A DNA stretch of 64,000 bases from Thalia democratica (lineage: Eukaryota). Shown here in pieces: positions 4,021 to 51,881 of this stretch. Each line of letters begins with the position of its first letter. Positions within the stretch are counted from its first letter, which is position 1. Made by a program: the position numbers and the translations under genes. Location: the NCBI GenBank assembly GCA_965202585.1, contig OZ241829.1, positions 14,818,001-14,882,000 of the forward strand. Direction: 5' to 3'. The notes beneath the pieces are model-generated. The model searched no databases. It saw nothing but the letters and a program-made list of their open reading frames with translations, and was not told the origin of the DNA.

Positions 4021-5430
4021 AGTTTTACAGAAAACCTGATTAAAAATGAGGACAAGCTAATACTTCAAATTAAAACTAACAAGGTTTTATTAGATGAAGT
4101 TGAAGAAAAAAGGATTTCCAAGTTCGCAAATAAAAAGTAAAATGCAAACAACAGTGTGGTTTGTTATTACTTATCAAAGAATTTCAAGCTTTTAAACTTG
4201 AATGAAAGTTCCATGAACTTCGTGGAGAGCTGCTTTCCAATAGTTGCTGAGTCGGACTACTTTTTAGAACTTGATTTCAACTTCATCAAAAAATTATTAT
4301 CGAGCAGCGGATTGAGCGTAGACACGGAAGTGCAAGTATTCAATGCAGCAAACAGGTGGATTAACTATGATGTAACAGAGCGTAGCAAACAAGTGGTACA
4401 CCTCCTGTCTAAAGTTCGACTTCAGCTTCTATCAGCTCCAGCTTTAGCCTATCTCCGAATTGCTTGCAGAGCGTCATCTTTTAGCATTGATGGTAATGAA
4501 TGCACTGAGGTTATTAAAACAGTTTTATTGGACAAGAAACATTCAACCACAACAAATGGCGACGTTAAAACCAGATATTGCAACCAAACTAGTTTTAACA
4601 TAGTTGTTTGTGGAGGGCAAAATATAAATAAATTTAACACCGTTAGTGAAGTAAAACTTTTAAAGAATACCAACTTTCGTGGAATGAAGTATTTGCGGCG
4701 AATGAAAATAGCCCGAGAAAATTTTGGAGCAGTTTGTGTTAAAGGTGAAGTTTATGTGTTTGGTGGAATTGATCTTCATTTAAATTGCATAATGCCAGTT
4801 GAAAAATACTCCCCTCTTACCAACACTTAGGAACACATATCTAACATGTATGATGGTTGTATTTATTTTTCCACTTGTTCTTTTATGGAAAGTGTTTATA
4901 TTGTTGGCGGATCTATTAGTTTTTCATCTACAGCTACGAGTGTTAAATTTAGTACAAAAACCTATGAATGGGAAGAAATCGCCAATATGAACGATGCAAG
5001 AAAGTTTTCAGCTAGTTCCGTATTTGAAGGAAGAATTATCGTATCTGGTGGACGGAATGGTAATGTAACACTAAACAATGTAGAAGCATATGATCATGCA
5101 GCTCATACATGGTCATGAATGCCGGACATGATTGAAAGAAGATACCATCACAAATCAGTTGCAGTAAAAAACAAACTGTTTCAAATTGGTGGTTTAAACA
5201 ACTGTGAAGTTTATGATTCCAATACTGAAGTGTTTACTTTGTTGATAGAACATGAATAAAATATTTTTAGCATGTTTAGCAATGCTATCGAAGCGATCAC
5301 AGTTGGTAGCAAGTTATTTGTTTTTTGCCACGGAGGTAAAGTTATGGTTTACGACTTTGAAATCGATGAATGGTCAGAAAAAAGCTGTTATGCAACAAGA
5401 AATATTGCGAAGTTTTCCTGCGTAAATTAA
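4021..5430 (+). pseudogene. Intronless BACK-Kelch (kelch-like) pseudogene
   Basis: One reading frame gives a BACK region (YFLELDF...VFNAANRWINYD.ERS..LLSKVRLQLL) and Kelch repeats (VYVFGG..VEKYSP, VYIVGG, IIVSGG..VEAYD, LFQIGG..CEVYD). In-frame stops at 4138, 4828, 5116 and 5257; terminal TAA at 5428-5430. Confidence 0.85.
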
Positions 5431-31803: not shown

Positions 31804-33233
31804 GTAAATATTCAGAGGTTTTGAGTTAATGATAGCTGAGCAGTAAAAGTTGGTCACATCCCAAAATGCAGAATTTTTAGAAACTGAGGTAGAGCTAACT
31901 AATAGGATCATGAAATTCAATAAACAATAAAAAGTATACAATAAAAAAGTTACTGAAATGAATAAAGTCAGATTAACACCCAATGAGATAGTCAAGGCAG
32001 ATTGTATTAAGAAGTGGGATAGAAATTGGGAGACTAAATATAGAGGTGCTCAAAGGGAAATTAGAAAAAACATGGACAAAATTGACGGTTTTGAGGGCAA
32101 AATCATACCTGCAGGAGAGGGCAATAAATATGTTGATATTCCACAGCTGAGTGCAGGGCCAGGTATGGTTAAAAAGTACAGAAAGAAATTTGATGCTGGA
32201 TCAACTTCTAGTACTTTTTCACAGCAAGTCGTCGTTAGAAACCAATTGGCAATGGACAAATTCACAGATTACCACAAGAAGATTAGCAATGACATGAAAA
32301 TGGAAGAATTCAAGGGTCAGATCAGTATGGCTGACATTGACTTCTACTCCTATGACCGGGGTCAAGTTTTTAAGAAGATCTGGAAGTGTGCTGACGAAAA
32401 TTCCATGATCGCCAAGATGAGCGATAAAGAATTCGCTGCCGATGTTACTGATGTTCATATGGTTAGTTAGAGGAACTAACTTTGAGCGAATTAAGAAAGG
32501 ACTGAGTCAAAGAACTCAAGATCGCATAAATGTCTTAATGAATAGGTACGGGTTTAAAACTCGTAAAAAAGATGATACAACCAAGGCGATGGTAAGGCTA
32601 CAAAATGACGACTTAACAGTCTCAAGATTTTGTGATCTGTACCCGATGAGAGTCTGGGCCATTTGGCATAATACTGATAAAGCTCAGAGACCTAGTTTCC
32701 TAACACATACAAATTTAACAGATGAAGAGATAGAACTGGCTAGAAGTCTTCGATGTCCTTCATTACCCTATTTGTGCTCTAAAACCCTACGAGATGGATC
32801 CAAGGATTGTTTTGATTTTAAAAACCTTTTATCCTTTCATTCTATTTTCCTCCTCGACTTCGACTGTCTGATGTTCTCTTGGGTAAAAGGTAGGCCTAAC
32901 ATGCCGGACACTTTTAAGCCACGACTTGGTCTGATTTGCCAAATCGTGAAAAAGAAGGTCATGGCCAAAGATTTTGTGCCTAAAGATGAAAATAAGTTTG
33001 AATCTCTCAATAAAGCAAACCTTATTGTAGGAAATGATCACACTGAAATGAGAGAAAGCCCTGATTTGATCAAGAAGCTTGTGCCCATTGCTGAAAAGAT
33101 TCTCACTGCAGTGATGAACGAACAGGATGCAATTGAAAACTCACTAGAGAATATTTTGAATGACCTCAGAAATAAGAAAGAATTGCCTATTTTAAGGCCT
33201 AGTAAATCCTTAGGTTGTAATGTAAGTAAGTAA
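31804..33233 (+). pseudogene. Endogenous viral element: phenuivirus-like (Bunyavirales) nucleocapsid N gene
   Basis: ORFs 31958-32470 and 32442-33233 join through one frameshift at ~32444. Collinear matches to phlebovirus/tenuivirus N motifs (recalled): DFYSYDRGQVFKKI ~ FAYQGFD.RRV; WLVRGTN ~ ALTRGNK; INVLMNRYGFK ~ VEALINKYKLK; NDDLTVSRF ~ RDELTLSRV; RCPSL ~ MHPSF; FHSIFLLDF ~ AHSLYLLQF. The frame continues upstream to 31808 with two stops. Confidence 0.8.
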
Positions 33234-46952: not shown

Positions 46953-48729
46953 ATTAAGGACATATAGCTCTACAACTAAGCATCCCCATATTACATCTTT
47001 GTTTATAAGTACACAAGATAAGTTAAAAAAAAGTATAGTGAATAGTGTCTTTTGAACAACCAACTTTAAGGTTCTTGTAAAGCAATATCTTAATTTTTTA
47101 ATGTCTATTAATTTAATTTCAATTTTTTAAGCAACTTGAACAATAATTTTCTATAAAAACTATATCAAACTAGAGAAAACCATAATAAAAAACAAATTAC
47201 AGGTGTCTGTGTCTGAATTTTTTTGTTAGCTAGCAAACCATTTTTAGATATAACTTATAGATAATTTTGAGTAAGTTGAACTGACCATCTACAAAATTCA
47301 ACAACTTATGAAATTCTTAAAAATAAAATATAAAATATAATTTTCAAAGGACCTCATTTATGAACCATTCAACTAATTTTATTATAGTTTTATTGCTATG
47401 TCAAATCAAAAATGTCAATATCTGCATTAACCCACTTTCTCAGCTCACTGTGCAACACCATCAATGTATTTACTTCAGCTTAGTTATTAGTACAGTGTTT
47501 CAGCCTTTTATTAAGTAAAAAGTCCAGCTTGAGTCGGCCCAAGTTGGTTAAAAAATCAAAAAATTTTTTGAGTTAAATACTTTAGCTACTTTTTGACCTA
47601 GATATAAACTTTAGAATAATTAAAATACAAAATTTTATACACTTATTGGATAAATTTAACTTTATACATATGATGATCTATCAGTTATTAAAACTAAATC
47701 AATTAAACTTTTATAAAATAAAATGTAATTATATAATAAAGTTATTAAATATTACTAAGTTACAGTGGGACAACAACTCACATACAGATATATTTCAAGT
47801 TTATTTACTTATACTTTATCATGTGTGAACAGCATTCCATAGTAGGTACTTCATATTGTTGAGTGCAAGGAAATAAAGTGAGCAAAGAATGTTTAAGAAC
47901 TTTGTGAAGATGTTTCCAATTTTTTATTAAACTTTATAAGTAGGAGAAAAGGGTTTTTTGGTCATCCAATTTAAACCAGGGTTGAACTTACGATACTTTA
48001 ATCCGTTTGTAGTACACTTGTAGTGATTACAAATAAAATTTTCATAATGAAAAATTAAGAAATTTATAAAACTAACTTTAAACTAATAAAACACAAGAAA
48101 ACGTTTAGATAAAATTATAAAAATATTTCAAATTTGTAAGATTATTGTTTGTTTTACTATGGTTTTATTAGAAAAACTTATCGTATGGCTTAACAGAAAT
48201 TTAGAAACTAGTGTTACTTTTGTTTTAAAAATACATTATAAACTACTGGAAGGTTTAAAACGCTTATAGGTTATTTAAATGCTAATTTGTACTTTTTAGC
48301 AAAAGGTAGTCTTATAAATAAAAGACATGTTTTGGTTATATTAATATTTTCATGGTGTAAAACTCAACACTAACCATTGTACAAGCAATATTACAAGAAT
48401 TTTTTTTTAATGTATAGTAACTTTTACATTTTAATATAGACTAATCTTAAAATAGTTTTTTTATCTGAAATAGTTAATATTCTATTAGCTTCAAAGTTAT
48501 AAGGTTTTTCTTTTATTTAGATATTATAGAAAAACAAAAACTTTTATTTAACATTTACAAATTAAAAACAAGACACTTAAAAACTAAAAATAGTAGTTTA
48601 TTAATAAAATCAACAAAATCGGCGAAAGTCTGCAGAACAAGTCCGGACTTTCGTTTGCCGTGAGACAAGCTCAAATTTAACAAAAGGGTTGATCATGCCA
48701 ATTCGATCATCAGACCACAAGTTTCGGTA

Positions 48730-48772
48730 GACTGAGACCGGTTTCGTCCTTATTAGGACTCATCAGTCAGTC
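48730..48772 (-). ncRNA. Type I hammerhead ribozyme
   Basis: Minus strand reads GACUGA-CUGAUGA-GUCC-UAAUAA-GGAC-GAAA-C-CG-G-UC/UCAGUC. Confidence 0.9.
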
Positions 48773-49057
48773 ACAACCGAAAAACTTGTAGTCGTCAATC
48801 TACAAACGGTTTATCATGCTTTCGCATGAAGCTACCATTTGCTGGCAATGATTAGTGACGTCAGCATTGTCTTTGCCGTGCAACGTTTAAAACATTGTCC
48901 ACTAGGCAAGACATCTGGTACGCTCGTTTTAGTACAATCAACAAAATCGGCGAAAGTCTGCAGAACAAGTCCGGACTTTCGTTTGCCGTGAGACAAGCTC
49001 AAATTTAACAAAAGGGTTGATCATGCCAATTCGATCATCAGACCACAAGTTTCGGTA

Positions 49058-49100
49058 GACTGAGACCGGTTTCGTCCTTATTAGGACTCATCAGTCAGTC
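49058..49100 (-). ncRNA. Type I hammerhead ribozyme
   Basis: Identical copy, +328 bp. Confidence 0.9.
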
Positions 49101-49385
49101 ACAACCGAAAAACTTGTAGTCGTCAATCTACAAACGGTTTATCATGCTTTCGCATGAAGCTACCATTTGCTGGCAATGATTAGTGACGTCAGCATTGTCT
49201 TTGCCGTGCAACGTTTAAAACATTGTCCACTAGGCAAGACATCTGGTACGCTCGTTTTAGTACAATCAACAAAATCGGCGAAAGTCTGCAGAACAAGTCC
49301 GGACTTTCGTTTGCCGTGAGACAAGCTCAAATTTAACAAAAGGGTTGATCATGCCAATTCGATCATCAGACCACAAGTTTCGGTA

Positions 49386-49428
49386 GACTGAGACCGGTTT
49401 CGTCCTTATTAGGACTCATCAGTCAGTC
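49386..49428 (-). ncRNA. Type I hammerhead ribozyme
   Basis: Identical copy, +656 bp. Confidence 0.9.
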
Positions 49429-49713
49429 ACAACCGAAAAACTTGTAGTCGTCAATCTACAAACGGTTTATCATGCTTTCGCATGAAGCTACCATTTGCTG
49501 GCAATGATTAGTGACGTCAGCATTGTCTTTGCCGTGCAACGTTTAAAACATTGTCCACTAGGCAAGACATCTGGTACGCTCGTTTTAGTACAATCAACAA
49601 AATCGGCGAAAGTCTGCAGAACAAGTCCGGACTTTCGTTTGCCGTGAGACAAGCTCAAATTTAACAAAAGGGTTGATCATGCCAATTCGATCATCAGACC
49701 ACAAGTTTCGGTA

Positions 49714-49756
49714 GACTGAGACCGGTTTCGTCCTTATTAGGACTCATCAGTCAGTC
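49714..49756 (-). ncRNA. Type I hammerhead ribozyme
   Basis: Identical copy, +984 bp. Confidence 0.9.
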
Positions 49757-50227
49757 ACAACCGAAAAACTTGTAGTCGTCAATCTACAAACGGTTTATCA
49801 TGCTTTCGCATGAAGCTACCATTTGCTGGCAATGATTAGTGACGTCAGCATTGTCTTTGCCGTGCAACGTTTAAAACATTGTCCACTAGGCAAGACATCT
49901 GGTACGCTCGTTTTAGTACAATCAACAAAATCGGCGAAAGTCTGCAGAACAAGTCCGGACTTTCGTTTGCCGTGAGACAAGCTCAAATTTAACAAAAGGG
50001 TTGATCATGCCAATTCGATCATCAGACCACAAGTTTCGGTAGACTGAGGCCGATTTTGTTGATTGTACTAAAACGAGCGTACCAGATGTCTTGCCTAGTG
50101 GACAATGTTTTAAACGTTGCACGGCAAAGACAATGCTGACGTCACTAATCATTGCCAGCAAATGGTAGCTTCATGCGAAAGCATGATAAACCGTTTGTAG
50201 ATTGACGACTACAAGTTTTTCGGTTGT

Positions 50228-50270
50228 GACTGACTGATGAGTCCTAATAAGGACGAAACCGGTCTCAGTC
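50228..50270 (+). ncRNA. Type I hammerhead ribozyme
   Basis: Stem I GACUGA/UCAGUC, core CUGAUGA (50234-50240), stem II GUCC/GGAC, GAAA, minimal palindromic stem III ACCGGU; predicted cleavage after GUC at 50264. Confidence 0.92.
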
Positions 50271-50555
50271 TACCGAAACTTGTGGTCTGATGATCGAATT
50301 GGCATGATCAACCCTTTTGTTAAATTTGAGCTTGTCTCACGGCAAACGAAAGTCCGGACTTGTTCTGCAGACTTTCGCCGATTTTGTTGATTGTACTAAA
50401 ACGAGCGTACCAGATGTCTTGCCTAGTGGACAATGTTTTAAACGTTGCACGGCAAAGACAATGCTGACGTCACTAATCATTGCCAGCAAATGGTAGCTTC
50501 ATGCGAAAGCATGATAAACCGTTTGTAGATTGACGACTACAAGTTTTTCGGTTGT

Positions 50556-50598
50556 GACTGACTGATGAGTCCTAATAAGGACGAAACCGGTCTCAGTC
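50556..50598 (+). ncRNA. Type I hammerhead ribozyme
   Basis: Identical copy, +328 bp; predicted cleavage after 50592. Confidence 0.92.
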
Positions 50599-51881
50599 TA
50601 CCGAAACTTGTGGTCTTTATTAATAAAAGTAACAAATATAAATTACTTAAAAATGAATTAAACTTCATTACAATAATTTGAAACCGAAACGATGAATGTT
50701 AAGTTCTTCTCTGTATCTGTTATCAGAAATAAAGGTTTTTAAAGTTGATAAATCTAGTATTTATGTGAACTGCTTCTATTGTAAAGTATGTATACAAGTA
50801 TATTTTGAATGTTGTACTACTCTTAAAAAACTTTGAACTAATAAAACTTTCTGGAAAAATAGAAATTCAGAAATATACTTATGCTTATGTCGAAATGCTA
50901 TACAACCAGAATAGAAAAATAATTACGACATTCACTTTTTTGAAACAATCTGAAAAACATCAAGACGGCTTTATTCACAAATAACGAAAAGTATAGAGAA
51001 TAAAACTGGAATTTTCAACAAAGTATTTATATTAACAAATTATTAAGTACTTTTCTATTTTACTTATTTTAAAGTTAAAAAAAATTGCTTAAGTTTTCCA
51101 ACTACAAAGTAAAGTTTGTAATGATACCATCATACACTTTTTTTGTATGTTTGACATATACATTGATCATAGTGGCAGCTGATTATTTTAGAAACTTTTT
51201 TCAGGTTCTTTTACAGTTTCCTTGTTTCTTGTTAGTAGCAAATTAAAAATAAGGTTAAAACTGTATTATAGTTACTGAAAAGATTCTGTAGTACTACTTT
51301 TTTGTGTTAAAAAGTAAACAAAGTTTTACAAAATTAAAACCTTTTAATGAACGAAGTTGAGATAGTTTTCATTTTATCTGAAAGAGTACGGATAGATGAT
51401 TTCTAGAATTATGTGTCTTTTTCTATTTAAAATTTATCAATATTATGATGAACTTATTTTATAAAACCTACTTTAATAGCAAAAACAAATTGTGTGAAAC
51501 TGGTTAACAGCATTCACTGTACATTGGAGGCTAACACGAAGTTGATGTGAAAAAATAAAAAAACTTTATAAAATCCTTTCGCAGGTCGATGAAACTCTTT
51601 TGCAAGCCGCTGCCAGAAGAGAAACTTTCAAGCGACCTCCTAGAGACCTAGATGTTCCTTTCTTAATAAAATCGAGTCGAGGCTAAGATCAGAGATCTAC
51701 ACTGACAGTAGAGAAGTTACTGCAACAATACGGATTATTTTTGCTCATTCATTGACCTTAAAAGCGAATTTTTATTAACTTTTGAAATGTTTTACTCAAG
51801 TAGACGGGGATATTTATTTAAAATGTAAGCGGTAGAAGTATTTCGTTCCATCTGTAGTTAAACATGCCCGCTACGAGAACC

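Follow-up and report, generated by a model that had tools for sequence, protein, structure and literature searches.

A young inverted array of a 328-nt hammerhead repeat in Thalia democratica, with signs of insertion from two primed target ends

A 64,000-nt (64-kb) stretch of the Thalia democratica genome (assembly GCA_965202585.1, contig OZ241829.1, positions 14,818,001 to 14,882,000; hereafter the window) harbours two head-to-head arms of a non-coding 328-nt repeat with a hammerhead ribozyme, and this array looks like a single young insertion event bracketed by one exact target site duplication (TSD). We read it as one recent retrotransposition of an animal retrozyme of the kind devoid of long terminal repeats (non-LTR) by a Penelope-like reverse transcriptase (RT)/endonuclease, in which the longer, main arm would have stopped at the self-cleaved 5′ end of its template, and we assign this reading a probability of roughly 0.55. 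In the literature, the insertion of animal retrozymes and Penelope-like elements is still undefined (PMC8557442) and the role of their hammerheads unknown. A very young, unmutated insertion keeps every junction and thereby reveals the RNA positions that were used as starts and stops.

Both copies of the 13-bp TSD TTTATTAATAAAA are exact and directly flank the array, and on the + strand of the window the motif matches at 48597 and 50616 only; at the local base composition, an identity over 13 nt has a chance of ~1.6e-7. This confirms what a first-pass annotation of the window had claimed, namely that the duplication brackets the whole inverted array, and supports its view that the array arrived in one event. 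Between the TSD copies the sequence has a period of 328, numbered here such that position 1 is the first base past the predicted ribozyme cut (GGUC/UCAGUC). On its sense (−) strand the left, main arm (1439 nt, 4.39 units) starts with unit 328, continues through four full units and closes with 1-126, while the right arm (567 nt, 1.73 units) comprises unit 113-328, one full unit and 1-23, and is an exact reverse complement of left-arm sequence. There are zero mismatches between units, within or across arms, all copies being 100 % identical. The G+C content of the array is 43 % versus 25-27 % in the flanks, and no further copies of the unit occur within the 64 kb. As read from arm polarity in unit coordinates, the outer end of each arm is a 3′ end of the ribozyme-sense strand, just as the first-pass annotation had it, and shares a microhomology of only 1-2 nt with the target. 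At the inner side the head-to-head junction is sharp, having zero filler and zero shared bases, and the 5′ end of the left arm (50048) is at C17, preceding the predicted cut by one base, so that its earlier placement within 1 nt of the cut holds as well.

The target itself is AT-rich. The first 12 bp of the TSD (48597-48608) form a perfect palindrome, TTTATTAATAAA, of a kind that starts at only 0.1 % of the window positions, and target bases 48601-48609 are complementary at 7/9 positions to unit 127-135, located just 3′ of the left-arm start. A palindromic target of this sort would fit a dimeric endonuclease that cuts symmetrically; palindromy as a general rule was rejected, as the TSD of a related copy (L018, described below) is not palindromic.

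At gathering thresholds, Rfam returned no match in the window. The family HH9 nevertheless matches six motifs (four on the − and two on the + strand), each with 38.8 bits and an E value of 8.7e-8, below the gathering score of 52; the top match at relaxed thresholds, MIR6440 (49888-50096), is spurious, being the hairpin that the two arms form across their junction. In all hammerheads the catalytic core is intact (CUGAUGA...GAAA...GUC, followed by the cut), helix I has 6 bp, helix II 5 bp, and helix III consists of the palindrome ACCGGU without a loop. Judged by these features, the motif is predicted to be a minimal, dimer-dependent type I hammerhead, as described for Penelope-like elements. The predicted fold of the monomer RNA is more stable than that of shuffled controls (z = −4.8). 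As expected of a retrozyme, the array is without protein-coding capacity, LTR, primer binding site (PBS) or polypurine tract (PPT), and no LTR lies around it; the longest open reading frame (ORF) inside the unit has 59 aa, and ORF relatives in the protein databases carry no Pfam domain. Marine metatranscriptome contigs match the unit exactly, cut site included, which agrees with expression but falls short of proving it, as carry-over of DNA is possible.

Related contigs were drawn from marine metagenome assemblies via short ORFs falling inside the unit, yielding ten independent loci that are 79-95 % identical to it (L002=L008, L003=L010, L004=L009, L005, L006, L007, L011-L015, L016=L017 and L018). 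Their arm ends (Table 1) are far from evenly spread over the unit. Three of five 3′ ends fall within unit 122-128 (p = 9e-5), and with both arms of the window counted, positions 124-128 account for 4/7 independent cases and 56-60 for another 2/7. The arm 5′ ends in the related loci lie within unit 100-129 in 6/11 cases (p = 1.8e-4). An A-tail was found at no arm end, neither in the window nor in the related loci. The usual start of reverse transcription in this family is thus near unit 125, with a second start near 58, and the usual stop zone is 100-129. This zone is located at and just 3′ of a hairpin predicted at unit 76-116. The block at unit 138-210, which sits just 3′ of the usual start, is 95-97 % identical across related loci (otherwise 79-95 %), a conservation equal to that of the ribozyme core; by analogy with the Penelope-like protein studied in 2024 (PMC11167929), it is a candidate for the element that the helper enzyme recognises. 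Two ends of the array in the window, the 3′ end of the left arm (126) and the 5′ end of the right arm (113), are therefore usual ends of the family; the 3′ end of the right arm (23/24) and the 5′ end of the left arm at the cut site are unusual.

The copy L018 is a simple one. It spans 1.03 units, from 118 to 328 and then from 1 to 125, within an imperfect TSD of ~16 bp, and since it holds an uncut 328-to-1 join, it was copied from either a circular or a multimeric template. Simple copies also led us to drop the 14-nt overlap between the arms of the window (unit 113-126) as a twin-priming signature of one linear template, as L016 and L018 share those ends. Likewise, we rejected the idea that the 3′ ends arise where Pol III terminates, at a T-run near unit 118-121, the unit having several other runs of T4-T5. 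Another, older related copy (L011:150-345 and L015:150-285) has a scrambled 5′ part, in which short antisense pieces (about unit 55-26 and 92-72) precede sense 244-305 and then 12-328; hence, some insertions are more complex than two arms.

Inverted arms are not confined to the window. Head-to-head arms, whose presence in other arrays the first-pass annotation had suggested looking for, recur in L002/L008, L005 and L007, and short Logan contigs, which constitute our read evidence and were placed on 48000-51200, contain many more. In three runs from two labelled organisms, with ~8,000 family contigs placed per run, 464 antisense-sense joints were counted, and as these come from independent contigs, head-to-head joins are common and real in the family rather than something introduced by this assembly. 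Only 21/464 joints were readable: none of the 21 lies exactly at unit 1/328, three permit this position with microhomology, and several are within 25 nt of the cut; all 21 fall into unit 193-328 or 1-67, where far more contigs are placed, and they are therefore no measure of enrichment near the cut. One contig of run X3 (record 32) matches the locus up to exactly 50616 and continues with 51 unlike letters, resembling an empty site; this is unproven, as the rest of the contig is unreadable.

The mechanism that we infer from these junctions would run as follows. A Penelope-like enzyme would make a 13-bp staggered cut in the AT-rich palindromic target, and both target 3′ ends would serve as primers. 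From the top-strand end, synthesis would start at the usual internal site (about unit 126) and copy 4.39 units of a multimeric or circular RNA; from the bottom-strand end, it would start at the unusual site (unit 23/24), copy 1.73 units and stop in the usual zone (113). The two cDNA 3′ ends would then be joined bluntly, leaving head-to-head arms inside one TSD. For the main arm, the stop would most likely be a run-off at a template 5′ end made by hammerhead self-cleavage, plus one added G. That both target nicks were primed is supported by both outer ends being 3′ ends with only 1-2 nt of microhomology. The twin-priming-like scheme put forward in the first-pass annotation accordingly survives in this part, which fits the Penelope-like scar as well as extension of both strands in vitro, but needs no second template, since both arms are explained by a single RNA, be it a circle or a linear molecule of 6.07 units or more. 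Overall, the two-primer reading is supported and corresponds to a known insertion scar and to known biochemistry. The left arm does exceed four units with intact ribozymes inside, as had been noted; rolling reverse transcription does not follow from this length alone, because the number of units may have changed by growth after insertion.

Penelope-like insertions consist of tandem copies, often with an inverted 5′-truncated copy at the 5′ end, and their cycle has been called still undefined (PMC8557442). Frangieh et al. 2024 (PMC11167929) purified a Penelope-like protein and showed that it cleaves an AT-rich target on both strands and extends each of them; in the anole Penelope-like element, reverse transcription starts at internal sites ~85-92 nt 3′ of the hammerhead cut (PMC11167929). 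The array in the window resembles these elements in its tandem copies with an adjoining inverted 5′-truncated copy, its AT-rich target, its minimal hammerhead without helix III loop, and its starts of reverse transcription at defined internal sites tens of bases 3′ of the cut, with no poly(A) and no homology to the target. It differs from them in lacking an ORF, in the distance of the starts from the cut (~58 and ~125 nt versus ~85-92 in the anole element), and in its target, where, as given above, 7/9 positions are complementary to the RNA segment that follows the start. Finally, the main arm has its 5′ end at the ribozyme cut, and ends of this kind were not seen in the 2024 Penelope-like study (PMC11167929).

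This cut-site 5′ end is a single case, attributable either to run-off on self-cleaved RNA or to chance. For the boldest reading, in which the hammerhead cut really set the end and the Penelope-like enzyme copied a retrozyme RNA that had cleaved itself while remaining multimeric, or else a circle that was cut as it was being copied, we see odds well below even. Several observations weigh against run-off. The first-pass annotation had proposed to look for an accumulation of 5′ ends at the cleavage site in other copies, and there is none: 0/11 arm 5′ ends (eight related loci) are found there, with a 95 % upper bound of 24 %, the majority being in the stop zone instead, so that a cut-site rule beyond the present locus is not supported. 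Moreover, the end is at C17 and not at U1.1, and run-off would hence need a non-templated G or else an uncleaved template. Hammerhead cleavage is also dispensable for Penelope-like insertion in vitro, where no reads started at the cut site (PMC11167929), and minimal hammerheads cleave poorly in vitro. With several copies of the family inspected, one accidental match also becomes more likely. The absent pile-up, the one-base offset and the dispensable cleavage, along with joints of other copies that spread over many unit positions, equally favour the same two-primer, Penelope-style event in which the 5′ end of the main arm arose by random truncation or by a structure-induced stop at the folded ribozyme core, self-cleavage having no role. 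We regard this as a serious contender, albeit one well short of even odds. It has to assume that the arm landed within one base of the cut by accident, for which the chance is ~1.2 % per arm end and roughly 1-2 % per junction, and it leaves aside that cleaved linear retrozyme RNAs are abundant in animals, so that some run-off ends are expected.

It is very improbable that an insertion in one orientation was later rearranged at the DNA level, be it that its 5′ part was inverted and 14 bp (unit 113-126) were duplicated, that the number of units changed through unequal crossing-over or slippage, or both. Tandem arrays do vary in copy number, and the presence of unit 113-126 at the inner end of the right arm and the outer end of the left arm is what a staggered-break inversion would leave; however, one breakpoint would need to coincide exactly with the TSD boundary, the insertion is too young, no unit carrying any change, the head-to-head shape is seen again in unrelated loci, and the ends 113 and 126 are usual for the family even in simple copies such as L018. 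Least credible of all is an assembly artefact of a high-copy repeat in the inverted join or the arm lengths, for although structures of Penelope type are known to trouble assemblies (PMC8557442) and no short Logan contig spans the stretch, fold-back chimeras mirror outward from their join, whereas here unit 328 meets unit 113, the two flanks differ and carry the exact 13-bp TSD, and head-to-head joins are common in independent data.

Returning to the retrotransposition of a retrozyme by a Penelope-like enzyme, the array is close to the animal non-LTR retrozymes, which form tandem hammerhead repeats of 170-400 nt with TSDs of more than 4 bp and occur as linear and circular RNA (PMC7229834; PMC7761336). 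The array shares with them tandem non-coding units in the 170-400 nt range, one type I hammerhead each, a G+C content below 50 %, a TSD longer than 4 bp and a stable monomer fold, and more-than-unit cDNAs are expected in these retrozymes from circular or multimeric RNA. The retrozyme papers of 2020 reported no motif pointing to a helper element (PMC7229834; PMC7761336). Unlike in those accounts, the starts near 125 and 58, the stop at 100-129 and the inverted arm in one TSD point here to a Penelope-like helper. According to a proposal of 2014, more-than-unit cDNAs are templated by circles that the hammerhead has cut and that were then ligated, and opposite-strand hammerhead pairs were noted too; a 2026 preprint ties vertebrate retrozymes to Penelope pLTRs by phylogeny and leaves the junctions unanalysed.

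The insertion is also reminiscent of twin priming, reportedly described for LINE-1 by Ostertag and Kazazian in 2001. Common to both are one TSD, two arms with outer 3′ ends and, where the arms are inverted, a short stretch that is present twice (unit 113-126). Unlike in LINE-1, which primes on a poly(A) tail at a T-rich nick made by an APE-type endonuclease, there is neither poly(A) nor T-rich priming, the enzyme would be of a different class, and the arms end at unit 126 and 23/24; besides, 113 is a usual stop even in non-inverted copies, so that the overlap is not specific to twin priming. Although it proceeds as twin priming does, the insertion is not attributable to LINE-1. Lastly, the hammerhead satellites of newts, Schistosoma and cave crickets likewise have a unit of ~330 nt, a dimer-dependent type I hammerhead and tandem arrays, but the array in the window, instead of building a long satellite block, was inserted very recently at a dispersed site and bears a TSD.

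Table 1. Features of the array (window coordinates) and arm ends in related loci (unit coordinates).
Feature	Position	Strand	Remark
Left TSD copy	48597-48609		TTTATTAATAAAA; 48608-48609 (AA) equally attributable to unit 127-128
Left (main) arm	48610-50048	−	3′ end at 126, the usual RT start of the family; 5′ end C17
Hammerhead motif	48714-48784	−	predicted cut 48736/48735
Hammerhead motif	49042-49112	−	identical; predicted cut 49064/49063
Hammerhead motif	49370-49440	−	identical; predicted cut 49392/49391
Hammerhead motif	49698-49768	−	identical; predicted cut 49720/49719
Arm junction	50048-50049		antisense unit 328 joined to sense unit 113
Right arm, inverted 5′-truncated copy	50049-50615	+	5′ end 113 inside the 5′-end zone of the family (100-129)
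Hammerhead motif	50216-50286	+	predicted cut 50264/50265
Predicted stable hairpin, unit 76-116	e.g. 50340-50380	+	repeated in every unit
Best-conserved block, unit 138-210	e.g. 50402-50474	+	repeated in every unit
Hammerhead motif	50544-50614	+	predicted cut 50592/50593; right arm ends 23 nt past cut
Right TSD copy	50616-50628		base 50616 (T) could be unit 24
3′ ends against flank, related loci	~124 (L002), 56 (L007), 125-128 (L011), 60 (L016), 125 (L018)		unit coordinates
5′ ends against flank, related loci	102 (L003), 100 (L004), 72 (L006), 118 (L016), 118 (L018)		unit coordinates
Head-to-head junctions, related loci	245 with 57 (L002), 129 with 31 (L005), 120 with 180 (L007)		unit coordinates

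The ribozyme module also occurs apart from the remainder of the unit. In each of the three runs, 11-39 contigs match only about unit 294-328 (unit 328 being at window 48736 and 50264, unit 294 at 48770 and 50230); they diverge exactly after C17 into partly conserved sequence starting GTAGGTTGT, and on the other side before 294. Neither the window nor any of the fetched loci contains this motif. The contigs represent either another family, with nothing but the ribozyme module in common, or chimeras that have their joint at the cut site; this site is possibly also a recombination point between families. An exact-pattern scan of JGI metagenomes gave one contig (L001), which has in common with the unit only an identical 33-nt ribozyme core; in this contig, from another AT-rich eukaryote, the similarity (192-224) likewise stops right at the cut site, and formation of helix I is impossible. 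The same type of scan found no matches in bacterial and archaeal genomes or in viral contigs. Among runs X1-X30, near-identical copies of the unit (0.80-0.94 of the sampled words) were present in runs labelled with five different organisms, and also in marine and fish-gut metagenomes and marine metatranscriptomes, which may be due to close relatives, prey DNA or horizontal spread; the flanks of the insertion are present in only three runs.

No Penelope-like partner element was found in the window, where six ORFs of at least 110 aa were listed and four of them scanned for domains. An ORF at 4156-4830 (+) has BACK and Kelch domains (E 5e-21) and is probably an exon of a host gene of the BTB-Kelch type. 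A 263-aa ORF at 32442-33233 (+) matches the nucleocapsid family of tenuiviruses and phleboviruses weakly (E 5.5e-4, 20 bits versus a cut-off of 25) and may be an endogenous viral fragment.

For the biology of these elements, the main value of the locus lies in the pattern of its family, that is, fixed starts, a stop zone by a predicted hairpin and a conserved block near the start, rather than in the coincidence at the cut site. The start sites, the stop zone and the conserved block are testable candidate signals for the helper enzyme. If the hammerhead cut did set the end of the main arm, ribozyme cleavage would for the first time have left a trace in the genome at an insertion of this type. 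Together with the starts near 125 and 58, the stop zone and the conserved block of the family, this would amount to the first in vivo record of the positions on a retrozyme RNA at which such an enzyme begins and halts. Should a small class of copies indeed have 5′ ends at the cut site, the ribozyme would gain a defined function in the cycle of insertion.

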